63,816 bases of DNA, filler included, from Hausera hauseri (GCA_046269625.1; 9 parts of 9 records of this genome joined end to end with filler, not necessarily neighbours in it); one strand, 5' to 3'; shown: positions 4,213 through 21,000, counted from the whole stretch's first letter. The notes: generated from the sequence alone by a model not told the origin. Numbers and translations: made by a program.

Positions 4213-4277
4213 CACAGACACTTTTCGTTTAGTGATTTTTTCTTTCCGTCTATTTTGATCTTTATAGTTTTCACTTT

Positions 4278-4393
4278 GCCACGGGGGTGATGTGGTGCTC
4301 ACAGCGGCCGGTGCCCTTTGGCCCATTTGGTTGGACACAACCCGGTGTCCGCTATCGCCGCGTCGGATCAGTGGTCGGGTCCGACTCCCCGCT
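4278..4393 (+). repeat. PPT-like tract plus short GC-rich 3' terminal repeat of family A
   Basis: ACGGGGGTGA|TGTGGTGC…CTCCCCGCT; homologous to 45727-45817, with similarity ending after CCCCGCTT. Confidence 0.7.
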
Positions 4394-6880
4394 TTAAGAA
4401 TATAATCCGTCGAATTAGCTGAGAAGATTACCGAGTATATTGTTAATTCAATTACTCCAATAACCACCGATATTAACCCCTTCGGTAAACTGGCTACTGC
4501 TGTTCAATCTAGCAATTCACCAGGTGCAAACAATGCAGTCAGTAAAAGGACCAATGGTATGCAACCTTTCACAAATATGTTGAAGGCGTCTGCTCCATTT
4601 TCATCCCGCCATATATTCAGTCTAACAACGAGCAATTTATTTCAATTATCCGTGATGCCAAGGGAGCTAGAAGAAGTAATTGGAATGAATGCCGTCATAA
4701 ATCTTGCCAAAGAAATTACAAATTGACTAGAGATACAATATCCAAAATATTTCAATCTAATTATGAAGCAGATTTTTGGGAAAATATTTTATTTAATGCC
4801 AACTTCGGCAAATTCGACATTAACAGTCTAGGTAGATGTAATAAAAATCAAAAAGAAATCGGAAAACTTTTATGTATTCAACGTCCGGACACTGATAAAG
4901 GATTAGCATCTGACGGGTAACAAACAAGGAATTACGGATAGTGATAAAAATAAAGAAAAAAGCAATTCTGATGAGTACTCAGATTCTCAACAAGATGACT
5001 TATTTAACTATGTTGTTGAACCATTAACAATGAATTTTGAATCACCCAATAGTTTTTTGTCAATAATTTATCCCAAGTGCCATTCGGATCAACGGCTTTT
5101 TCAGACATTAATTGTGACTCTGGTCCATGATTATCTATTGATTCAGATTAATTTTTGCAAATTTAAGATTTTGATCAAAGTTCGTCAATTTTGAAATTCA
5201 GTACCGCAAAGAGTACTTTGAGCTGCAATGCAGAATCCAAGGAAATGACTTACACAGATAGCGACGTCATACTAAAAGCTCGTCAAAAACGTATAGTCGT
5301 AATTCATGCATTTTGAAAGATAATAGCAATCCTGGCCCACTAAAGCTGGATTCGTGTATCAGTAAATCAGATCGGATTTACCGATCCTTTCTTTTAAGTG
5401 TTATTGGTTGTGACACAATTTTGTTTAAATAATATAGAATTATCTTTTGCAGTGTTCAGTTTGAATTATTTTCACCATCTTGATTTTAATTTAAATTTTC
5501 TAAAATTTGTTCGTCATTAATTGGTGTTGTTAGACTTACAATATTAAATCTATTTATTTATATTAGTGGATTTATTTGTGTTCCATTTATACATATTTCT
5601 TTTTTACATCTGTCTGGTGCAGTTCAACTCAACATTTTAGTGGGCAAATTTAACTTCAAAAAGAAAGTTTTTGCTTGCGATAAGGAACAGAACAGACAAT
5701 GTCCTGGTGCGCCTATTCAGTTATAATGATAAATAATAAATGGTGTCAGAAGAATTTGTGGCACTCCGATATGGATATTTCCAAAAAGGTAATGCTGTTA
5801 TTTCCATCCGTTTCAAATTTTAAAAATTCTAATAATAATAACGGATACATGTTCTGCTCCGTTTTGCAAACGGGTATTGATAATCTGTACATCGATACCA
5901 ACTACTTTCTCGATACAACTAATAACAACCCTCCGCTAACTCTAACCAGATGGGCATTTGTTCCCTCCCAACCAGGTTTACTGACGGCCGCTTACGCACA
6001 CAACAACATACTGTTCTGCTTGGCTGTTGGGCCGGACGGATTTGCCTATCGGGTAGCGGAGAGGCACGGTGGTGCTGGGCCAGTATCACTTGACATGTTT
6101 GACATATCGGTAGCTAGTCTTACCAAAGTTACGGATGCTATCACCTTTCCATAGCGCACAATCAATGACGGAGGTAGTAGCACTTCTACAGTATCTATGA
6201 TCGCTACTTCTGATGGGTTGTACTGGCTACGCGACTCATTCAGAAATTCATATTTACATCATTGTTTGGATCGCGCACCTGTGTTTTAACATATTAACGA
6301 TGGTCCAACAACAACCATTGAGGGTCAACAAAAACAGCACAAGACTCAGGATAGCGTTTTTCTTGATGATGCATTATGTGATCATATTCCCGTTAATTTT
6401 TTTGGAGCACTGTGAACAGACGAACGACGTTTCATTCAGTGGAGATCGGCTGTTGGAATTGTACTCACAGGATGTACTTAATAGTCGTACGACCAATCAG
6501 AAACAGAGTATCACAGTTGTTTGCAAAAAGCCAGTAGCAATAGTCATTAGCAACCGGCGACTGGACTCAGTAATCGTTGTGTACGTATCGGTATCAATTC
6601 TGCTGATTCCAGTAAGGTGCTGAGATATGTTGAGGTATACAGCAGGAAGGCACACATGCCTAATGGATTAACAAAGAGCTGCATTGTTGACAATGGTTTA
6701 TACAAATCAGAAATAGCCCATAACGAAACGTCGCTCACTATCCATGTGGCTACAGTAGGAACACTAACGATATAATCGTTGTCGACTTCAAACAAGCTAA
6801 CAAACAAACGCTACTCAGAGGCAAAGATTTATTTGCTCCGTGCAAACAAAAACCAAGGAAGCCCCCGTCTAATCTGAGAA

Positions 6881-7800
6881 ATGGTTCTAATACGGGTCGT
6901 TTGTGGAAGGGTGGTATTTGGACAAATGTTGAGGATGAAGTTTTTAAATCGACCATCATGAAATACGACACAAATCAGTGGGCCAGAGTGGCCTTATGGT
7001 TACATCATAAATCCGCATAACAGTGCAAATCCCGATGGTACGAATGGTTATCACCGACAGTAAGAAAGGCCGAATGGACGCAAGATGAAAATAAAAAACT
7101 GTTACATTTAGGAAAGGTCTTGCCGATGCAATGGCGAACTATATCAGGTATAATTGGACGTACAGCATCACAATGCGTACAGCAGTACAATTTACTGATC
7201 GATAAAAGTCGTGCTGATAAAGAAGGAATTACGGACATAGATAATATATGGCAAGATGATACCGATATTAGACCAGAGAGTAGACCAGCCAAACCTGATC
7301 CAGTTGACATGGCAGAAAATGACATTGATATGTTAAATGAAGCACGTGATAGGCTGACAAATACACAAGAAAAAGAGGCCAAACGTAAAGGACGAGGAAG
7401 GCAGCTGATAATGGCAAGGAGATTGGCGGCTGTACAGGAAAAACGTGAATTTGCAAGTGAGAATAATCGGAAAACCGATAAACAACAAGAAGAAACCTGG
7501 TATAAACTACAGCGATGAAATTCCATTTTACCAGGCAATTCCATGCGGATTCCACGACACATCCAACGAAGTTTATTAGCCAGTTGAATCGGCTATTGGT
7601 AAAAAAGTGAGCGAATTAGAGTTTGAAAATCGAGAACAACGTGAAAAGCGGGAACGTGTGAAAGACGTAGAATTAAAATGCAAACGAAAAGAAGAGAATC
7701 TCCCAGAAGTACTAAAAAATTCAACGACAAATTCCTCACAACTTAAAAGAACAAAACTCGTTCTACCAGACACGAAAGTGTCTGATGAAGTAATATTTCA
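6881..7800 (+). pseudogene. CDC5L: CDC5L/Cef1 Myb-domain splicing factor, N-terminal part, disrupted
   Basis: KGGIWTNVEDEV…QCKSRWYEWLSP…EWTQDENKKLLHL…QWRTI…GRTASQC…PESRPAKPDPVDM…LNEARDRLTNTQ…KRTKLVLP; in-frame TAA at 7018-7020; truncated by a retroelement at ~7801. Confidence 0.93.
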
Positions 7801-10800
7801 TGTGGGGAACTGGGTCACCCCGAAGTTTGGGATTCGCCGCGGCGAGTCTGAAGTCCCGGCCGCCCACCCTATACCACTGGGTCAGGTGGCACCGTTCGCT
7901 GACGCCCCACGACACGCCCCTGGCTACACGACCTCTCAGTATTCCCTCTTCTTTTTTTTAAATAATAAACATATTTACGCAATTGCATTAACACATTTAA
8001 CACTGCGGTTATCTACAACGTCATCTCCACTTTTCTTCACTCATCTGACTTTTATATCACACACAATGGATCTGCAATACTCATCGCTGGAATCCTACAA
8101 TCTTCTTCAACTTATATCCGCCTCCAGATACACTTCCTCATCCGTGATGGCATGAATTCATCGCTCACCATAGACACCGCAGATAAAACCACCACGAAAC
8201 CAAAATCTATCATACTGCTTCAAAAACAATTCTGCTCCCACCAATAACACTTCACCTACTACCGCTTCCGCTCCTTTCCCTCACTGCACCGAATTCTTCA
8301 TTGACAACCAACGCTCCAGCACAACTTGGTTGCAATTCTATCAACTGTGGCTACAGGCAAACAATATCACCGATTCCTTAACCAAGGCACACAATCTACT
8401 CTTCTTACTCCCTAACAATATCAAAACACGAATTCACAACATCCTTGCAATACCTGAACTTCCTGATCCATATTCACAACTTTCCAAAGCCGTTCTTAAG
8501 ATCACGGAACCTTCCATGGACACGATTATACAATGCTTCTTCCTCGACAATGCTATAGGCACACAACGACCATCAGAATTTTCACGCACTTCTTTGGTAC
8601 ATCTGCACACTCTCGGCGTCACTAAAGAATACAATCCCGAACTACTGCGCCACTACTTTCTCAACGCCTTACCCATTTAAATTCGAACTCTACTTACCGT
8701 GGTGGAGGACTCCACGGCTCTTGAAAAATTGGCCAAATTAGCCGATAAAATACATGATGTCCTACACTTAAATTCCCCACCGCTCCTACAACGCAATCCA
8801 TTAATTTCCTTGTTGATACAGGTGCAGTGATTTCCTTATTACCACAATCTTTCACTGTACAAAATTCACCACTCAGAATTAAACTCTTATACACCGCTTC
8901 AGGTCAACTGCTGCACATTTTTGGCACCGCTAAATTATCTTCCATCTTAGCAAAATTTCCTTCACTTTTTCACAGGATGTTCACAGTTGCTAACGTCCAG
9001 ACGGCAATTCTAAGGTCAGGTTTTCTATCACATTATAATTTATTGGTTGACTGCAGTCAACGATGTTTGAGGAGTGCAATCAATGACAGCATTGCTGAGC
9101 ATGTCAATAGCATTTCGAATACTGTGCAGTCGATCGAGATACGCAGGTCAATTTTGGGAAAATCAATAAATAATTCGAATTTCCATAACAATAAATCAAT
9201 TTGTAAATTTTTAAATAATAATACTGATATTCGATCGAGGTTCTATGTCGACAATTGTGGTACTGTCACCAATGTTCATTCACTTGACGAAATAACTTCA
9301 TCCAACACCATTTTTAATTTGACTATCTTACATCAAATACCACTTGACTGCACATCACAAAACAATTCACAAATTGAATCCGCTACTACTCAACCTCTTT
9401 CACCATCATCATCGAATTTATAACAGTTGCTTACAACTTTACAGCAATTCATTACCACATCATGTCCACGCGTACTTAAAAAAATCGTTCGTTTACCCCT
9501 ACAAATAGCACTGTACATCACATAATTACACAGCATCAACGACCAATACGCCAAAAGGTACGACCACTGTCACCTCGTCGTAGACAGGCTGTAGAAGCTG
9601 AATTTCTTGAATTAGAACGCTCCGGAATTGTACGCCGTTCCAAATGTCCTTGGTCGTCACATTTACACGTTGTACAAAAAAGGACGGTACTTTTAGACCA
9701 TGCGGCGGACTACCGCCAGTTGAACAACTTAACAATCATGGATGCGTACCCCTTACCACTCATCAAGGATATCTTGCATTGCCTTAATTCAACTACCATT
9801 TATTCGACCATCGATTTGGCCAAAGCATACCACCGAATACCGGTGGCACCCGAAGACATAGAAAAAACTGCTGTCACTACTCCTTTTAGCCTCTACGAGT
9901 ACCTGTTTATGCCTTTCGGTTTGCAAAATGCCGCACAGACCTTTCAGCGATATATTAATTTGATTCTCTCAGATTTCCCGTTTGTGCACCCTTACATTGA
10001 TGATATTCTGATCGTTTTGTCTTCAGCCAAATAACACGAGGAATACATTCATGCAATATTCCAACGCATTAACCACCACAATCTCTAAGTCACTTTCGAC
10101 AAATGCTACTTGTTTAAAAAGCGCATCAACTTTTTGGGCCACGTTATTTTACCAGACGGAGACTCTCCTCAGCCAGACTGAGTTGAGGCCCTTAAAATAT
10201 CCAGTTACCACGTACGACCACCGAAATGCGCAGCTTCCTTTGTACACTGCACTTTGTACATAAATATGTACCATATTGCTCAGAGTTGACAGCACCATTT
10301 GCAAATTTAAGCGGTGGCAAAAACATTAGCCAATCCAGTGGACACCTGACTTGGTAGATAAACTTTATAAATTACGCGAAGGAATCAAGACCGTCGACAT
10401 TCTCGCTTTCCCCAAGCCTGATGCGGAACTCATCCTTACCATTGGGTTAATAATTTATTTGTCGATTTTTTATCTAGGTCGGTTGGTTCGATTCATTTTT
10501 CACCGACTTTTACGCAAGCTCAAATTTAACAAAACCAGCCACCTCAAGACATGTTTAATTCTTTCAAGTCTTGCACAGTGGTTGACGGAGTAGCTTTAGA
10601 CACTTACAAACCAGGTCATTCCTTAATAATTCTCGCGCCATCATTGCAAAGGCAAGCATTTAATAGCCATCCCTCTGCGGAGCACAAACACAGACACTAT
10701 AGCTGACGTTTTCATTCCTACATGGATTAGCAAGTTTGGATAACCTCGTTTCATCATCACGGACCAGGGTCCACAGTTTGAATCCAACCTGTTCAAATCC

Positions 10801-10976
10801 CTTGTTACCCGATTAGTGATCCATGACATACATACTACGCCTTACCATCCCCAATCGAATGGCCTCCTAGAACGCTTGTACCGAACATTGAAAACGTCTC
10901 TAAGAATCCTTGCAGAGTCCAACACTAGTTGGACGAATCTTCTTCCGTTTGTTCTGCTTGGCTGGCGGAACACTCC
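7801..10976 (+). mobile_element. Gypsy family A copy 2 (5' terminus present, internal deletions, cut by contig end)
   Basis: Starts TGTGGGG where CDC5L homology stops; Ubl-Gag, LVDTGA protease, RT YIDD, integrase YHPQSNGLLER; clearly homologous to copy 1. Confidence 0.93.
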
Positions 10977-11076
10977 NNNNNNNNNNNNNNNNNNNNNNNN
11001 NNNNNNNNNNNNNNNNNNNNTTAATTAATTAANNNNNNNNNNNNNNNNNNNNNNNNNNNNNNNNNNNNNNNNNNNN
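10977..11076. other. Artificial contig linker N44-TTAATTAATTAA-N44 (also 17817-17916, 24056-24155, 30703-30802, 36762-36861, 42315-42414, 47498-47597, 59484-59583)
   Basis: Eight identical 100-nt spacers with stops in all six frames. Confidence 0.99.
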
Positions 11077-14000
11077 TTGGTGCCATTTTAACTTTTATTC
11101 CTTTAGCGTTATATCGTCTGCATGTCTTGCAATAAGCGTTGTAACTTTTAACCAACTTCCTTAACTTGGGGATCCAATACTTTTGTGAAACCTCAGCTAT
11201 TTGTTGATTTATTCCTCCACAATGCTTTAATTTCATGTGATAGTGTTCCACGATGAGTTTTGCTAATTTTTCCTTGTTTGATAGAATTACTGGGTATTTA
11301 TACTCCCATAGCAAGAATTCACTCGTTACTAATCTACTATTACTCCTAATTAATGCATCTTCTGTAATTACGGGATTAGCTTTTTTTAGTTCTACTCCTC
11401 TTTCCAATGCTTTTAGCTCTTCAGCTAATTTGTTCTTTTGATCCTCCTTCAATAACAGTACTCTAGCTTTTTTGAATAACTGACTTTCATCCTCATCGCT
11501 TTGATCGTCCGTTTGGTTGTTTTTCTATTCTTTAACTTTCATAATTATAAGTTGGCTCCATCTCGAGTTCTCCCGCTCTGTTTCTTCTAAGATAGTTCGT
11601 TCAGTCGAAATATTCGTATGTAACGTTAATTTTTCTTTTCTTTATCGAATCCTTCTTTAATAGTCGGTTGTATAGGCCAACTTCCCTTTGGTTTTACTAA
11701 AAATTCCGGTCCCTGCCACCACAACTGGTTCTTAGCTAGTTGAATTATTGTGGAACCCCTAGTTAAAACGTCTGCAGGGTTAATTTTCGTCGGAATATAC
11801 CTCCATTGAGCTCCTTTTAACTTTTCTTGAATATAACTAATTCTATTCGCTACGAAAGTTTTGTATAGCTTTCCATGTCTCACCCAATGTAGTACGTCCA
11901 TACTGTCGCTCCAATAACACAACTTCTTGTCGTCGTACTCTAATGCCGTCGAAACCTTCTGTCCTACTTTTACTCCTGTCACAGCAACTAATAACTCCAA
12001 TCGCAGTACTGAAACCACTTTTCTTGGTGATATTTTACTTTTCGCTACTATTATGTTGCTAGTTCTTCTATCCCCTGTGGTGACCATGTAAGCGACGGCT
12101 CCATAAGCATCTTTGAACGCATCACAGAATATATGTATTCCATATGGTGACTGATCGGCTATTAGGACACGTCTTATTTGAACATTATCCAAATCTTGTT
12201 GTTCCGATACCCATTCTTTCGCTTGCTTGATTAAGTGGTCTGGGAGTTGTTCGTCCCAATATGCGCCATGCATTCACATTTCTTAAATAATCAATTTTCC
12301 TTTCATTAAATAACTACTGAGAAACCCTAATGGATCAAATATTCTAGCTACTGAGCTCAAAAAATTTCTTTTTGTAGTAATTTCCTCTAATTGGACTCTT
12401 TTATCGAAAAAGAATACATCACTATTAGCGTTCCACCTCATACCTACAGTTTTTGTCTTTGTCTCTTCATCTACAATCTGGTAACACGCTGATATTTCAT
12501 ATTCCGGTATGATTTCTCGTAACCTCTCGGAATTTTAGACCCACTTTCTCGCAGACATACTAGCTTGGCTCCCCATCCATTTCAAATCACAGTACATCTT
12601 CACTGCTTCGTTCTCTGTCTTAACAGACACCAAGCTATCGTCCATATACGTAGCGTTTTTAACAACCCATGCCGCTTCAGGTACACGTTCTGCGTGTTTC
12701 TCGGCGTTTACACGACTTACTAATTGCGCTAGGTATAATGATGTATTCAATCCAAATACTAGTCTCTTAAATTCGTAGACTTTCTCAATATTTCCTTCCT
12801 TCCATAGAAATCTTAAGTATCTTCGGTCTTCCTGTGCCACCCCAATTTGTAGAAACATTTCTGTAATGTCACACACCATAGCAATTTCGTATTTTCTAAA
12901 CCTGATTAATATGTCTACTAAGTCTAATTGCAACTTTGGTCCTTGGTGGATCATATCATTCAAACTAAGACCCATATTTTTTGAGGCTGCATCGAACACT
13001 ATTTTAATTTTCGTCGTTTCTGCATCTCTTCTTACGACCGGAAAATGTGGTAGAATCCAACCCGTTGTATTGGTTTTCAGCACTTCTGTGACGTTCTTAA
13101 TATACCCTTTCCTTTCGTGCTCGACTATTTGATTCTGGTAACCTTCCTTCAAGCTCAAATACTTTTCTAATTTGTTTTCAAACAGCGATAACCGTCTCCT
13201 AGCAATTCTATTATTATCTGGCAACTCTTGTGGGTTTTTCTTCCATGGAATTTTGACTTCGTACCTATGATTAACGTACCTCATATCTCCCTTGGATCTC
13301 TCCATTATTCTCTCTTCTTCCTTTGTCCACTGTTGGTTCTTTTCTAACATATCTTCTAACCTCCATAACCGCTCTAAATCATCCTTTAACGCCTCTTCAC
13401 TTAAGAAGAAACATCTAATAAAGTTGGATCGCTTCTGCCATGGTCTTGTTGATATTGGTCCGATACAGGTCCACTCTAGTGGTGTTAATCGAGTCACGGG
13501 TTCTCATTCTTTCCCGGATATTTCTTTGATCGCTTGGTGAAGCTGACTATAATTTACTCTTATTAAACCCTCAACCTTCCCTGACTTTATAACATTTGGG
13601 AAAGGTATTCCCCTTAAATGGTTCCATTTGTTTCTCGATATATTCCAATTGGTCGCGTTTAAATTACCTACAACGTTTTCGATTGTCATTGCTGAGACTT
13701 TCGCTTCTAACTTTCTATTTAGACTACAGAGGTAAAATTCGACCCTTGCTGCACTTCTCCTCCTCTTTTTTCCGCCTAAGATCTCTACCGAAATCGATTC
13801 TGGCTCTTGTTCTAAACGCAACCTTTCTGCTATTGAAGCACTAATGTAACTGTCAGTGCTAGCATCATCTAATAAAACATTGATCTTTTCTTTATACGTC
13901 CCATGGCGCACAATCACCGGAATTGTCCTCAATGACACTTCATTTTTCTCTTCTGTGCTATATCTTCCTGTTACGTAGCTCTTATTTTGATCACTCCCGA

Positions 14001-14151
14001 GCTTTTCTGATTGACTCGCGTTTCTCTCACTCCCACTCAGTGATGGTTCTCTCAACTTCTCTTATCTGATGTTATCTGTCTTATGTACTCGATTACTAAT
14101 TCGTCCCGCTGGCTTTTCGCTCCTATGTGACTCTGATTCCATTAATGTTCT

Positions 14152-14304
14152 ATGCAAAAACCGACATTTGTCTCCGTTTCTGCAGTTCCCCTGTTGGTAA
14201 TATCTGCAAATTTTGTCCTTGTTTTCATTCTTTTCTTCCTTATTTTCATGGGAGTATTTTCATTTCTTCCCGAAGGTGCAATTTCCCTTTGCGAACGCCC
14301 AACA
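14152..14304 (-). other. Two tandem CCCH (C-X7-C-X5-C-X3-H) zinc fingers in BEL/Pao Gag
   Basis: CWAFAKGNCTFGKK*KYSH (TGA in place of the third Cys) and CRYYQQGNCRNGDKCRFLH, same frame. Confidence 0.85.
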
Positions 14305-15438
14305 CGCTCCTTTAACCATTGAGACCTTCTCTTTAATTTCAGTGAAGTGATTATGATGGTAATTTACCTTTTTCTCTTTCGATCCATGACTTTGGTGGTA
14401 GTCATTGCATTGGAAACACTTAAAGTCATCAGGTCTTCCACCTCTTTGCTCTTTTGTCTCTAATACGTCTATCCCGTGTGCGGATTCCGCTGATACTCGA
14501 CGAATACCGGCTTCTTCCTCCAACCAATATTTTAACTCGCTGACGGTTTCATCTCTTCTACAACTTCTGCGATATCTTTCCCATTGACTGATTAATGTCT
14601 CCAGTAGCTTCTCTAGAACAATTTTATATAGCAGCCCACTATCAAGGTCATTCTCTTTGTTCAGGTTTCTAAGTCGCACCACAACGGCTTCCAGTAGTGA
14701 TACTAAGTTGTTTATCTGCTTGACATTATTCACACTTACTTTCTCGAATTTTTGGATTTCATCTATCAACGCAGCGATTTTTCTTTGCTTTTCACCATAA
14801 AACCTTTCGAGTTTCTGCAGTATTGCTTCGTACGATGTTTCGCTGATTCCAAAATTTGCTACTAACTTCTTTGCTTCACCACTGAGACAAGCCTCTAATT
14901 TTATCTGTTTTTCTACTGCTGATATTAGAGTTCGATGTACACAAACTTCGAACGTTTGCCTCCATTTCTCGTAGACAGCAACGTGTCCGCTAAATTTCGG
15001 CAATTCTATTCTACTCAAGGGAGGACACAAATTATCTGTAACTGAAGTCTATGTGGTTTTTTGTCGACTGCTTTCCTGGTCGCTCCGATTAGCGGCTATA
15101 CCCCGTAATCCTGCCACCACATCAGCATTCAGTTGACTCGGGACCTCTCTATCTTGAATCAGATCTTCTAGCTCATCGGTTCTATTTTGCTGCCTCGCTA
15201 TAATCTGAAGTTCCAGTATTTCCGACACTGTTTGTTCATACGTGTCACAAAATTCGTTGTAGGTCTTTCGCAATTCTTCTCCTGAATTTTCCACGTATAG
15301 TTTCCCGTGCATATTTTCTAATCGTGACTTCATTTTGTCCTTCCTCAGAAATCTCGTTTTAAATTCCTTTGTTAATCGCTTTGCATTCTCTGAGCTCGCC
15401 TTCAGCTTCTTCTCATAATTTTTACTTGACCTTTTGCT

Positions 15439-15659
15439 CCCTCCTTTTAATCCAAGAATTAAATGTATGGTGGTTCCATGAACTAACTCCTCCACATCCT
15501 TGTCGTCCCTATTCTTTTACTTTGATGGAAGAGCTTTAAAGATTCTGCCGATACCTTCAATTTTCCTTCTATTTTGACAATCAATTCATTTACTGATCTG
15601 ATCTTCGCCACATTGATTTGGGTTAATACACCTTCTCGTACTCTTATAAACACTTGTTT
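15439..15659 (-). other. Ubiquitin-like domain ending in LKGG at the N-terminus of BEL/Pao Gag (one frameshift near 15508)
   Basis: KQVFIRVREGVLTQINVAKIRSVNELIVKIEGKLKVSAESLKLFHQSKRI/DDKDVEELVHGTTIHLILGLKGG aligns end to end with ubiquitin. Confidence 0.85.
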
Positions 15660-16050
15660 GACATTTTTCTCATCTTTTCTTTTCATTTGGGAACCGTGAT
15701 CCTCTTCTTTCTGTATCCATTTTCTTTCCGTCTCCTTGATGATTTCCACTTCTCTCTTCTCCGTCATTTTATCATCCGGCTAGGATCTTTTTATACCCAT
15801 GGCCATTTAAAATGATTTTAATTAGCACTCTGCCCAAGAGTGAACCATCTCCCTATTAAGTGGCACTTCAACAATTTCACCGCAACTCACAGAAGCACTT
15901 TTATAACCTTCTCCGACCTGGTCTGTGATTTTCGCTTCTTCAATTTTAAACAAACGGAGTTGAGAAGTACCGAAAGCAAGAAGAAAGACAGAATTTTCTT
16001 AAGACGATCAGAAGTCGTGGTTTACACTCTCGGATTACAAGGGGGAGCGT

Positions 16051-16069
16051 AAACCACGCTCTGCTACCA
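16051..16069 (-). promoter_or_regulatory. Primer-binding site complementary to initiator tRNA-Met
   Basis: Minus strand TGGTAGCAGAGCGTGGTTT upstream of the gag ORF. Confidence 0.85.
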
Positions 16070-16404
16070 TATTGAGAATTTACATAGCTTCTACATTGTA
16101 AAGTTGTTCTAACATTCCACATATCGACCTCAGAATAAAAAATTTTATCCATCAAAATGTTATTCATATTAACATGTAAACCCACATTAACCCATTTTAT
16201 ATTGAGCCCAAATATTTTTAAACTCCAATCGCAAATGTATTTATCTTTAAATAATTTCCCTTTCTCCATTAATTTATTTATGCTTAGATTTAGTTTATTT
16301 CTGTAAACACATACCATAATTTGGGAGGAGTAGCTCTCATTCATCTTATTTTCCAACCCCGCTCTTTCGTCCCCATCGGACAAACAAACAAATCCCCCAC
16401 AACA
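16070..16404 (-). repeat. Putative 5' LTR of the BEL/Pao element
   Basis: Minus strand TGTTG…CAATA abutting the PBS, contains AATAAA; no second copy available to confirm the outer boundary. Confidence 0.4.
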
Positions 16405-16559
16405 CACCCCAAGTTGGCATCCGTGGAATCAAGATATAAACAATAACTAATATTGCTATAATTATCATCACTAACCAAAACTATAAAATCGTTAGTTGAC
16501 CTATTTGCTATCCTAGTATTTTTCCAGAAGTAGCAAGATCCCCGCCAACCTTTTGCCAA

Positions 16560-17010
16560 CGACGTATTAAACTTCTCGTAAGCCACATGTACATCAGCAT
16601 TATTTTTAACGCCTGGCAAACAGACGTTGCCCATACGGAGGATTGTCAAAGTCACCTCTGGATAAATTACTTTATAAATTAATGCGGGAAATCTTTTGGG
16701 ATAAAGAAAACCAAATTCGTTATCTGTCTGACGGGAAAGCATGAGATTTACGGTCCCTCCAACATAACAGCATGCCCTTAAACTGTAAGTTCGGTAGTTA
16801 ATAAGTCGAACATCCAAAGTAAATTTTAAAAAAATCCGAGTAACTCGTCGACAACCCGTTCCACACTCCTTTTCAAGGATAATTCTCACTACGATTGCCC
16901 TGCTTTTATAAATGATTGCAGTTGCATAGGGTTCGCGAGGACGAAATACTAAACCATCAAACCGACATGTATTACGTTCGGAATTGTTGGTTAGTGACTG
17001 TGACTGATGT
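16560..17010 (-). pseudogene. Divergent TATA-binding-protein (TBP/TRF)-like remnant
   Basis: NSERNTCRFDGLVFRPREPYATAIIYKS… and YPKRFPALIYKVIYPEVTLTILRMGNVCLPGVKNNADVHVAYEKF match both TBP repeats. Confidence 0.7.
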
Positions 17011-17085
17011 AACAGTAATTATGATAGGTACTGTGAGAGGAACGATATAACTCAATTCATGTTTAGGAAACATAATGTGTCTGAG

Positions 17086-17210
17086 TCACGAAAGTCGTTG
17101 GCAATCACGGCTTGGCAAGATAATTTTGCCCGAGATAAATCCTATAATATAATGTGATTTTCCAGCTTTTATGACACCACAAATTACGATTCGAATTCCA
17201 CCACTATTTA
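17086..17210 (-). pseudogene. Possible dynamin/mitofusin-like GTPase P-loop fragment
   Basis: IRIVICGVIKAGKSHYIIGFISGKIILPS resembles the G1 motif region; too short to be sure. Confidence 0.35.
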
Positions 17211-18029
17211 AATTAGTTAAGAATTCGTTCCACCCTAACAGTAGGTTAAAGACTGTTATTGCACTGCTTAGAAGGTTCTCGGATTTTTCGAAAGATGTGC
17301 TTAAAAGGTTGCAACTATTCAATATGAATTATTGATAGTGGATCGTCAAAATAAAAATGCTTCTCTGATTTTGATACTTCTCCTTTATACCTTTTTCTCT
17401 AAAACTTCTAGTTCCACGAGTGCCCACAAGGGTTGTGTTGTATTTACATATCAGTCGTCACACAATTTTTCTTACATATTTCCACACCTATTTTACATTT
17501 TCAAGCATGTAGATTTCTTACAAACAAACTCAATTCCACACAAATTTAACATGATAAACCTAAAATATGTGTACAATCTCTATATATAACGTCAACATTC
17601 GCTCACTCCATTCTGTACATATACACACATGCCCACACACATACCTTTATATATACACCATATACATCTTCTTTCTTATCTATGCATCATGTCTTCCGGA
17701 TTACCCAACTAGTCAGTCAGGTTCCAACAAGACATATTCTCATTCCATCGCATGCTTAATTACTATCTACTTGTTATTTTTCACAGTATCATAGGACTAA
17801 ACAGCAATATCTACATNNNNNNNNNNNNNNNNNNNNNNNNNNNNNNNNNNNNNNNNNNNNTTAATTAATTAANNNNNNNNNNNNNNNNNNNNNNNNNNNN
17901 NNNNNNNNNNNNNNNNATGTATTTTGGTAGTTGCACTACCAAAATTATTGACATAAACTATCTCGACATCCTCCTACCACCGAATGGGAATTATTCAGAT
18001 CGAGCTTCGATGTTTTGCTTGCTAATTTG

Positions 18030-21000
18030 GTAGTACGGGTTCAACGTTGCCGGAATCCTCAACGTACCAGGGAATCTCCCGGGTATCATTTCGCAACCCC
18101 TTTCGTTCTTTGTTTTTCACAATAACAAACATGTATACCACATGCATAACACAGAAACTACACATCATTTATTCATCTCTTTCATCCCATCGCAATTCCT
18201 CTGATTTTTATCTGTCATACCACGGGTCAGTTTTACATCCGTCCGACTCACTTTCTCCTCTTTTTGCTCACTTCATCATTCACCTCACTTCATTATCGCG
18301 TCCGGGCGGATCGGATCCCGATCCCTTTTATGCTGAAAATTTCACTAAGACCATATATGGTTGCCGTCCTGCTGACCTCACACCAGCTACATCTCCAAAT
18401 CTCCCTTGCACGGATTTTTTTCTCGACAAAACGAATTCTAGTTGTACCTGGTTACAATTTCATTTGCAATGGTTTAAAGCCAATCATATTGCAGACTCCT
18501 TTTGCGGGCGAACAATTTGTTGCTACTACTTCCAGCTAATATCAAGCAGCAAATCAACAATCTTGCTAACATACTCACTTCTTCAAATTTATGTGATATG
18601 CTTTATGAATCAGTTTTGCATATAACCGACCCTTCCATTGACTGCATTATTCAAAAGTACTTTAATGAACACGTCATCGGAAATCAAGAACCGTCGGATT
18701 TCCTTAAAACTGCAATTTCGCAGTTGAGCTCCTTGGGTCTCATTTCCGTAAACAATGCCGATCTTCTTCGTCGGTATTTTCTTTCATCCTTGCCAACCTC
18801 TATCAGAGCGTTGCTCACGGTAGTAGACGACTCAACGGCCCTTGAAAAGCTTGCCTTATTGGCAGACACAAATTTTGACATTTTGCAATTTAATAGTTCA
18901 CAGTCAGTAGCTGCGGCAACCGCTCACACACCGTCACACACAGATAACACTTTATTTGCACAACAACTGCATATGATGCAGAAGCAATTCGACATACTCC
19001 AAAGGGCAATTTCTGCAATCACGGCCAAACTCAGTGACTTATCCATGCCTCGAGGAAGCGAAAACCGTGTTTCGCGTAATCGTAGCTTTTCCAGGCACTC
19101 TTCTCGGTCTAAATCTCGAGATGGTAGAATAATTTGCTTCTATCACAATAAATTCGGTAGAGAAGCAAGAAAGTGTGTTTTAGGTTGTCAATTCTACAAT
19201 GAACGTTATGCAGTAGACAACCCGATCTGCATCTACCACACAAAGTATCAGTCCAAGGCTAGGTCGTGTGTGCCATAATGCAAATATTATAAAAAGAATT
19301 CTAGTTTTTCTTCATCTTCTTCGCCTCCTCGTACTCATCATTCCTCTTATTTTTACCAACAATCCTCAAAAAGCTAATAATTCCACCAGATGCCACGAGA
19401 CATTCTGGAATAGGCAATATCGCCCAAACTTCTGGCCGTTTCGACACCGCCTCTACAATCTTTGTTGAAAGCTGAAATGTTATTTGGAGACACATCACAA
19501 ATAGACTTCCTTATCGATTCGGGAGCGGCCTTTTCACTTCTTCCTTTGTTTTTCTCTAACCCATCTAACACAGGTTTCACTCCTCCACTCTTCACTGCCT
19601 GTGATCAACCTTTGAACATTGTAGGTACCACAAAACTGACTTTCACATTCTCCAACCTACCAGCGAAGTTCTCCTGAAAATTTCACATAGCCAACATCAG
19701 ATCGCCCATAATAGGGTCCGATTTCCTGGCTGCATACGACTTGTTAGTCGACTGCAAGCATAAATGCCTCCTGCGTAGAAACTTCGTTGCAAATTCTAAC
19801 AAATGCTCACCAAACGACCAGTCGGACACTTTATCTTCCCCTGTTCATTCAAATGTCGATTTGACATGCTCCTTATCGGCCAATAACAGCACGCTTAATA
19901 AATCATCAATATTTTCAATTTCATCAAGTGAGAACAAAGCAATCTTGAAACAACCGATTGAGCCGAATATCATTAACAAAGTGCTCCGTGATTCTGCATC
20001 AATTACAGCCACCGACTCTTCCACTAATGTGCCCTCATCATTCTTATCGCTGGAATCCAATCTTAAATCCTTCCTCAAAACTTCTTGCTTCCGCACTCTT
20101 AAGAAGGACATCAATTTCAAGCCGCATTTTACAACATATCACCACATAGTAACCGAGCACCAAAGACCTATCAGAAAAAAGTAAGGCCACTGTCACCTCT
20201 CAGATGAAAAGCTGTTGAATCAGAGTTCAATGAACTCGAAGGGGCTGGCATAATTCGAAGATCCAAATCACCGTGGACTTCACCATTGCATGTAGTGACA
20301 AATAAGGATGGCACTTAAAGACCATGTGGTGACTATCGTCAGTTAAATAATCTAACAGTCCTCGATGCTTACCATTTACATCTCATAAATAACATCCTGC
20401 ACAGCCTTACCAACACTAACACGTACTCCACAATTGACTTGCATAAAGCATATCATAAAATTCCTGTTGCACCTAATGATATTCCAAAAACTGCTATTAT
20501 TACTCCATTTGGCCTCTACGAATATATCTTTATGCCATTTCGTTTACGTAGTGCTTCTCAAACTTTCCAACGACACATTGATACCGTACTCTCAGGTTTG
20601 ATTTCGCTCATCCATATATTGATGACATATTAGTTGCCTCTACGTCTGTCAAACACCATCAAGAACACCTTCGTATTATCTTTCACAGACTACATCACAG
20701 CAATTTGCAAGTCAACTTCTCAAAGTGTCATTTCTTTCAAAAACGTGTAAATTTCCTAGGTCACGTCATCACTCCTCACGGCCACTCTCCACAACCGGAT
20801 CGACTACAACAATTGAAGAACATAACTCGACCAACGACTACCACGGACATGAGAAGCTTCTTATGCACACTCCACTTCATCCACAAATATATACCTCATT
20901 GTTCTGAGCTCACAGCACCTTTTGCACATTTGTCATCCGGAGAAAAGAGGCAGTTGATTCACTGGATTCCTGATCTAGTCACTAAGTTTGATCACTTATA

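Follow-up and report, generated by a model that had tools for sequence, protein, structure and literature searches.

Can a retrotransposon carry a ubiquitin-like (Ubl) domain of its own, fused to its Gag protein? This question was raised by positions 15439-15659 (minus strand) of a 63,816-nucleotide stretch of Hausera hauseri DNA (GCA_046269625.1; parts of nine records joined end to end with filler), referred to below as the window. These positions lie in an element that, by its domain content and order, is a BEL/Pao retrotransposon. Sequence comparison placed their product in the ubiquitin family, as a diverged member with a terminal Gly-Gly, and this is very probably a real Ubl that belongs to the element. 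The analysis covered the piece 11077-17816 of the window, and six-frame scans extended over exactly that span.

Ubiquitin similarity of a split reading frame

The Ubl domain comprises 74 residues, from an opening Lys codon that starts at 15659 to a second Gly codon that ends at 15439, and is interrupted by one frame break near 15502-15503. A reading made earlier from the sequence alone had given these coordinates and the residues that they encode, and translation reproduced both exactly. That reading had also proposed that the domain is hidden by a single frame break which splits it over two open reading frames (ORFs). In agreement with this proposal, two frames were found to meet at 15502-15503. 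Frame A (ORF 15483-15767, minus strand) encodes a leader of 36 residues, followed by 52 residues of the Ubl (15659-15504); its start, 15767, is the first ATG downstream of the upstream stops. Frame B (ORF 15049-15495, minus strand, open from 15516) encodes the final 21 Ubl residues (15501-15439), which end in Gly-Gly. The Gly-Gly codons occupy 15444-15439, and the residue that follows them is Ser, not Pro.

Similarity to ubiquitin was scored with a profile hidden Markov model (HMM) built from 97 distinct full-length 76-mers. These training sequences, all giant-virus ubiquitins, were taken from 120 matches in viral contigs to a degenerate DNA pattern for the ubiquitin tail; the pattern itself had been derived from ubiquitin sequences returned by a PDB search. 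For joint scoring, the pieces from frames A and B were joined in a script via an X at the break, while Pfam, PDB and structure predictions were run on the two pieces separately. For the joined 74-mer the score was 17.9 bits, with E 1.4e-7 when taken as one comparison. Residues 2-74 aligned to HMM positions 2-76 with one two-residue gap, and Gly-Gly fell on positions 75-76, the final two of the profile. These results supported the sequence-only reading in its claim of a Ubl that is collinear with ubiquitin and ends in a diglycine.

None of 2000 shuffles of the joined sequence reached 17.9 bits (best score 9.7), the reversed sequence scored 0.3 bits, and the maximum among 121 unrelated natural proteins was 2.0 bits. 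The score of the piece from frame A alone (Table 1) was reached by 2 of 2000 shuffles and that of the piece from frame B alone by none of 2000. When the frame A piece was shuffled and the frame B piece was kept intact, the best score was 17.0. Since this remained below 17.9, both halves of the domain contributed to the match. A six-frame scan of the piece with the HMM yielded only two matches, at 15656-15504 (HMM 2-52) and 15477-15439 (HMM 64-76), which were collinear.

Searches with the separate pieces pointed in the same direction. A 23-residue C-terminal piece, compared with all PDB sequences, gave 17 matches, all of them ubiquitin and all aligned to residues 64-76. E-values were 0.16-0.8 for di-ubiquitin chains and 1.5 for a single-copy chain; the very low values obtained for longer polyubiquitin chains are sums over repeats. 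With the 52-residue N-terminal piece, the PDB gave a designed ubiquitin (6l0l, E=1), a match that was collinear but weak. In the ESM Atlas, the nearest clusters to this N-terminal piece were those of PF00240 (0.92; 188 of 256 features shared), and the ten best named matches all belonged to one family.

Identity to ubiquitin amounted to 16 of 74 residues (~22%) and was unevenly distributed, with 7 identities in the last 11 residues and 9 in the other 63. The tail is thus the best-kept part of the domain, as would be expected if a cut site at its end matters. Of the 14 positions examined in the ubiquitin core (3, 5, 13, 15, 17, 23, 26, 30, 43, 50, 56, 61, 67 and 69), 13 are aliphatic in the element-encoded sequence, the sole exception being a Thr at position 13. 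Ubiquitin residues that were retained include Gly10, Lys29, Lys33, Leu43, Lys48, His68, Ile70, Leu71 and Leu73.

Some results weighed against assignment of a ubiquitin fold. Pfam did not report PF00240 for either of the separate pieces. AlphaFold2 (AF2), run without an alignment on the N-terminal 53 residues alone, predicted a single long helix with a predicted local distance difference test score (pLDDT) of 91. This helix was judged an artefact that stems from the truncation and charge of the fragment, although it is not to be dismissed. It was considered uninformative because the domain was truncated and no alignment was supplied; the same mode of prediction rendered the next 129 residues all-helical as well. 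In a split-domain test, the two halves of the domain were submitted to ESMFold2 as separate chains of a complex (15504-15662 and 15415-15504). The halves docked, with an interaction prediction score from aligned errors (ipSAE) of 0.45 against 0.02 for the best control, and runs agreed in at least 90% of contacts. Values of pLDDT were 62 for the partner and 72 for the other chain, compared with 41-53 in controls. In calibration, however, the range of ipSAE up to 0.60 held 5 of 78 solved complexes together with all four mismatched pairs that passed. The complex predictor graded the docking as 'weak support'; the evidence from fold prediction is weak.

The surrounding element and its copies

From 15516 down to 11626, a single reading frame runs through the Ubl tail, a helical stretch, Gag, protease, reverse transcriptase (RT) and the Peptidase_A17 region (Table 1). 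On the minus strand the domains follow the BEL/Pao order (DUF1759 Gag, DUF1758 protease, RT, Peptidase_A17 and integrase), and the element runs off the low-coordinate edge of the piece. The proposal that the Ubl is fused to the N-terminus of Gag held in so far as the domain shares a frame with the BEL/Pao Gag, but it does not occupy the extreme N-terminus, since the leader precedes it. Similarly, the statement that Gag follows directly was right in substance, although 129 helical residues and a TAG codon separate Gly-Gly from the DUF1759 core. For these 129 residues AF2 predicted four helices at low confidence, while Pfam gave no match and the ESM Atlas no usable one. The stretch was taken as the N-terminal region of Gag. 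The TAG codon is probably a product of decay, because it is one of eight in-frame stops in this copy. In the C-terminal part of Gag (14263-14420, minus strand) only remnants of Cys/His motifs were recognizable, with a weak match to zf-CCCH_4 (E 0.014).

Table 1. Features of the BEL/Pao element in the analysed piece, from its 5' end to the piece edge
Feature	Coordinates	Strand	Basis or remark
5' non-coding part (long terminal repeat, LTR, plus leader), outer boundary approximate	15768-16250	-	Drop in contig depth; stops upstream of ATG 15767
Leader, 36 residues, Lys/Glu-rich	15660-15767	-	First ATG to Ubl start; second Met 9 residues ahead of domain; ORF translation
Ubl N-terminal part, frame A, 52 residues	15504-15659	-	Ubiquitin positions 1-52; HMM 2-52; 7.8 bits; PF00240 features 0.92
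Frame break within Ubl	15502-15503	-	Frames A and B meet; window copy and part of family one base short
Ubl C-terminal part, frame B, 21 residues	15439-15501	-	Ubiquitin positions 54-76; PDB phmmer matches; 9.4 bits; HMM 64-76
Charged helical stretch, 129 residues, starts with Ser	15052-15438	-	Frame of Gag core; AF2 four helices, pLDDT 60
In-frame TAG	15049-15051	-	Between helical stretch and Gag core
Gag core DUF1759, remnants of zinc-knuckle-like Cys/His motifs	14263-15045	-	PF03564, E 8.7e-20
BEL/Pao aspartic protease	13507-14055	-	PF05585 DUF1758, E 1.7e-5
Reverse transcriptase	12538-13497	-	PF00078 (RVT_1), E 4.8e-9
Pao-type Peptidase_A17 region (RT / RNase H part of pol)	11629-12273	-	PF05380, E 1.3e-25
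Integrase start, zinc-binding domain	11080-11452	-	PF17921, E 1.9e-10; other frame, cut by piece edge

The eight in-frame stops of the gag-pol frame (11626-15516, minus strand) are located at 15049, 14260, 14062, 13504, 12535, 12283, 12274 and 11626, and a second frame change occurs ahead of the integrase. Because of these stops, this frame change and the break in the Ubl, the copy in the window is an old and dead one. No pair of LTRs was found within the piece, and the 3' end of the element lies outside it. The RT has 153 relatives in the protein collection, with 35-57% identity; the named ones are all from marine invertebrates (Mercenaria, Antedon, Haliotis, Montipora, Solemya and Ptychodera).

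Other copies of the region were surveyed in a public run (X1) of this organism, whose contigs were placed on the window at a likeness of at least 80%. One of these contigs is identical to the window over the unique flank 16814-17285. Summed contig depth, which is no basis for ranking parts of a gene, ranged from hundreds to thousands between 11900 and ~16255; it exceeded 1000 up to bin 16058-16255 and was at most 75 from 16256 onwards. This drop put the 5' boundary of the repeat at about 16250. Over the Ubl bins the depth was 967-1694, similar to that over protease and RT (581-1118). Distinct variant-bearing contigs numbered 17 at 15746 and 22 at 15781, positions in and just upstream of the leader. 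Many distinct contigs thus cover the region, and the Ubl is not an insertion private to the copy in the window; the sequence-only reading had named such a restriction to one copy as something that would speak against it. Differences between copies were mostly transitions (C>T at 233 places, T>C at 218, G>A at 171 and A>G at 163).

At 15503/15504, five contigs, which account for about a third of the placed depth, have a length that departs by one base from that of the window, and in these the two parts of the Ubl are joined in frame. This length difference indicated that the break is a defect of some copies rather than a feature of the gene, and that the domain is not confined to one copy. The break interrupts a domain midway, and other copies differ there by one base in length, so programmed frameshifting was rejected as its explanation.

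Other features of the same contigs spoke against a domain that is kept intact throughout the family. About two thirds of the placed depth has the length of the window at the break, so that many copies may carry a broken Ubl. Over the Gag core (14078-15265) depth amounted to 4222-20993, 3-20 times that over the Ubl, subject to the same restriction on depth as a measure. In addition, three contigs follow the Gag core as far as 15027, from where they part from the window towards the 5' side. Relatives that share the Gag core but have a different N-terminal module instead of the Ubl may therefore exist.

Searches for further relatives were negative or led to rejected candidates. When ORF B was compared by HMMER with 1.84 billion representative proteins, the only match was P0001, a repetitive coiled-coil protein with 21% identity, which was taken as spurious. 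Word-indexed protein searches with the N-terminal piece of the Ubl and with Gag gave no match, and neither did searches for related loci in metagenome contigs and viral contigs. The literature yielded no account of an LTR retrotransposon with a Ubl-Gag fusion, in a search that lacked most subscription journals and from which absence of such an account does not follow.

Possible roles of the domain and known ubiquitin fusions

The reading that was favoured, albeit tentatively and by analogy with known ubiquitin fusions, is that a leader-Ubl-Gag polyprotein is cut after Gly-Gly by a host hydrolase. In active elements, the polyprotein would begin with leader, Ubl and Gag, and a host C-terminal hydrolase of the ubiquitin or Ubl type would cut it after Gly-Gly, during synthesis or just after it and before the protease of the element itself becomes active. 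This cut would free a leader-Ubl product and leave Ser as the first residue of Gag. In this scheme the Ubl would serve as a detachable N-terminal aid to folding and expression, and the N-terminus of Gag would be set independently of the element protease. Selective retention of the tail supports such a cut, and Ser after Gly-Gly is compatible with it. That the domain is functional in active copies was judged fairly probable; should it be functional, cleavage after Gly-Gly by a host enzyme would have slightly more than an even chance.

Two properties of the domain count against a simple cleavage of the ubiquitin type. Arg72, Arg74 and Leu8 of ubiquitin are contacts for the ubiquitin-activating enzyme (E1) and for many ubiquitin-specific proteases, and in the Ubl they are replaced by Gly, Lys and Arg, respectively; for this reason, ubiquitin-specific enzymes may not accept the domain. 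Moreover, 36 residues (9 if translation starts at the second Met) precede the domain, unlike the situation in natural N-terminal ubiquitin fusions. Given these replacements and the leader, cleavage would call for a Ubl protease that is either dedicated or promiscuous. As its N-terminal position and its tail at Arg72/Arg74 both fail to conform, the Ubl was not classified as a classical cleaved precursor, although it may work like one in spite of failing on these two features.

The main rival to cleavage is an integral Ubl that remains uncut, as a result of which a 'pre-ubiquitinated' Gag would recruit, for the trafficking or release of particles, the endosomal sorting complex ESCRT-I/Tsg101-UEV (ubiquitin E2 variant domain), ALIX or other ubiquitin receptors, or else proteasome or shuttle factors. 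The UBL domains of Rad23, Dsk2 and Ddi1 couple to such proteasome or shuttle factors. This rival was considered rather unlikely. The leader and the non-ubiquitin residues in the tail are more in keeping with an internal domain than with a classical precursor, and the Ile44 patch is partly retained (Phe44, His68 and Ile70), but Leu8, which belongs to the recognition patch, is Arg. Integral domains of this kind usually lose Gly-Gly, whereas here the tail is the best conserved part. Ddi1/Ddi2 do pair a UBL with a retropepsin derived from a retroelement (PMC7072860). Ubiquitin fused directly to retroviral Gag promotes ESCRT-dependent budding (PMC2958808), but in that experimental fusion it is placed at the C-terminus instead of the N-terminus, and no env gene or budding is known for the present element, whose 3' part lies outside the piece. 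A domain without any function, gained as a fragment of a host Ubl mRNA by template switching in one sublineage and carried as a passenger in dead copies, was judged unlikely. Retroelements and RNA viruses do acquire host ubiquitin sequences (PMC2850149), and a passenger is consistent with the heavy decay of this copy, with the sharing of the break by most of the depth, with the divergence of contigs at 15027, with a depth over the Ubl that is below that of the Gag core and with the absence of a Ubl-bearing relative from the protein, metagenome-contig and viral-contig searches. On the other hand, identity is only ~22% and yet the tail and 13 of the 14 core positions are retained, which speaks for a long history of constrained evolution, except if a host Ubl that had already diverged was the donor. 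A passenger also accounts poorly for a domain that shares the frame of Gag, precedes a run of 129 open codons in AT-rich DNA and is present in many distinct contigs.

A released leader-Ubl might itself be the active product, either as a conjugated modifier or as a decoy that titrates host Ubl enzymes. Cleavage would expose a terminal Gly-Gly, Lys48, Lys29 and Lys33 are retained, and giant viruses and baculoviruses encode ubiquitins of their own; the 120 matches to the tail pattern in viral contigs gave 97 distinct full-length sequences. An active product of this type is nevertheless very improbable: Gly72 and Lys74 replace Arg residues that the ubiquitin E1 needs, Pfam shows no activating enzyme in the element and no RNA run was found that contains the sequence. 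Even less probable, by a little, is an interpretation in which the segment is not a Ubl or is not borne by the element, and reflects either chance resemblance in a Lys/Glu-rich leader or a neighbouring host exon. The silence of Pfam on both pieces and the AF2 helix for the N-terminal piece would fit chance resemblance, and a host ORF similar to TATA-binding protein (TBP) lies only ~600 bases upstream. These observations stand against the shuffle, reversal, six-frame and natural-protein controls, and against the collinear match of two independent pieces to ubiquitin. In addition, high-copy depth runs through the Ubl to ~16250 and the TBP-like ORF lies in low-depth DNA, while the part of the Ubl after the break is in the frame of Gag. 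On the basis of this depth boundary and of this shared frame, the Ubl was rejected as an exon of the TBP-like gene.

The ubiquitin-NS3 insertions of pestiviruses are processed by host hydrolases. In cytopathic pestiviruses such as bovine viral diarrhoea virus (BVDV) Osloss, as in the element, a module of the ubiquitin family with Gly-Gly is located inside the polyprotein of a selfish replicon, where it immediately precedes a protein whose free N-terminus matters. Insertions of ubiquitin or a Ubl are common at the N-terminus of pestivirus NS3 (PMC2850149). They are recent, sporadic and nearly identical to host genes, occur in an RNA virus and alter its pathogenicity. By contrast, the module described here is ~22% identical to ubiquitin, belongs to a multi-copy retrotransposon family and stands ahead of Gag, from which it may be cut. 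A similar comparison can be made with UBA52, RPS27A and FAU (FUBI-eS30), in which a Ubl with terminal Gly-Gly precedes a very basic protein. Host proteases detach this Ubl, and FUBI illustrates that a diverged Ubl can still be processed. In these host precursors, however, the Ubl is at the extreme N-terminus and its partner is a ribosomal protein, whereas the Ubl of the element has a leader ahead of it, Gly72/Lys74 in its tail and a retroelement capsid protein as its partner.

Gag proteins are ubiquitinated, and recruitment of ESCRT depends on this ubiquitination. To our knowledge, all known links between ubiquitin and Gag are either in trans or engineered. Zhadina and Bieniasz (2010) reported that foamy-virus Gag undergoes ESCRT-dependent release driven by a ubiquitin that is fused to it directly (PMC2958808). 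Their construct also places ubiquitin in cis with Gag, but it is artificial, C-terminal and non-cleavable, while the present fusion is natural and N-terminal and has an intact Gly-Gly. In Ddi1/Ddi2, whose retropepsin is held to be retroelement-derived (PMC7072860), an N-terminal UBL, a helical region and an aspartic protease of the retroviral type likewise occur in one polypeptide, a likeness in layout. Ddi1 is a host gene without Gag, RT and integrase, and its UBL is not cut off. Canonical BEL/Pao elements (Belpaoviridae) have the same domain order as the element described here, and no Ubl was described for them in the literature searched.

It is conceivable, though doubtful, that a BEL/Pao family has domesticated a Ubl as a working part of Gag, be it as a host-cleaved N-terminal cassette or as a built-in ubiquitin signal. 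If this is true, the fusion would be the first natural one between a Ubl and Gag in a retroelement, and would provide a natural model, or a concrete intermediate, for the origin of host proteins such as Ddi1 that combine a UBL with a retropepsin. A host-cut cassette would extend the strategy of pestiviruses to reverse-transcribing elements, and a built-in signal would couple capsid assembly to the ubiquitin-binding machinery of the host. A Ubl encoded in cis with Gag would represent a natural experiment on the role of a ubiquitin moiety for a capsid protein. If the domain is a dead passenger, it would be a curiosity of gene capture.

Other observations in the analysed piece

In the 5' non-coding part of the element, four contigs of the run part from the window below 15800 and ten do so above 15928; within each group the alternative sequence is consistent. 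These divergences may represent an LTR/internal boundary or junctions between subfamilies. Several contigs have three extra bases behind 13445, of three kinds, which constitutes an in-frame length polymorphism in the RT ORF.

The TBP-like ORF (16344-16889, minus strand, 182 residues) is situated outside the 5' end of the repeat, where depth in the run is 45-75. It contains one TBP repeat (PF00352, E 3.5e-8, residues 39-113) and, from this match, looks like a fragment or a paralogue of a host TBP-like gene. A second high-copy stretch (17444-17816, depth 1377-8702) is separated from the element by low-depth DNA.
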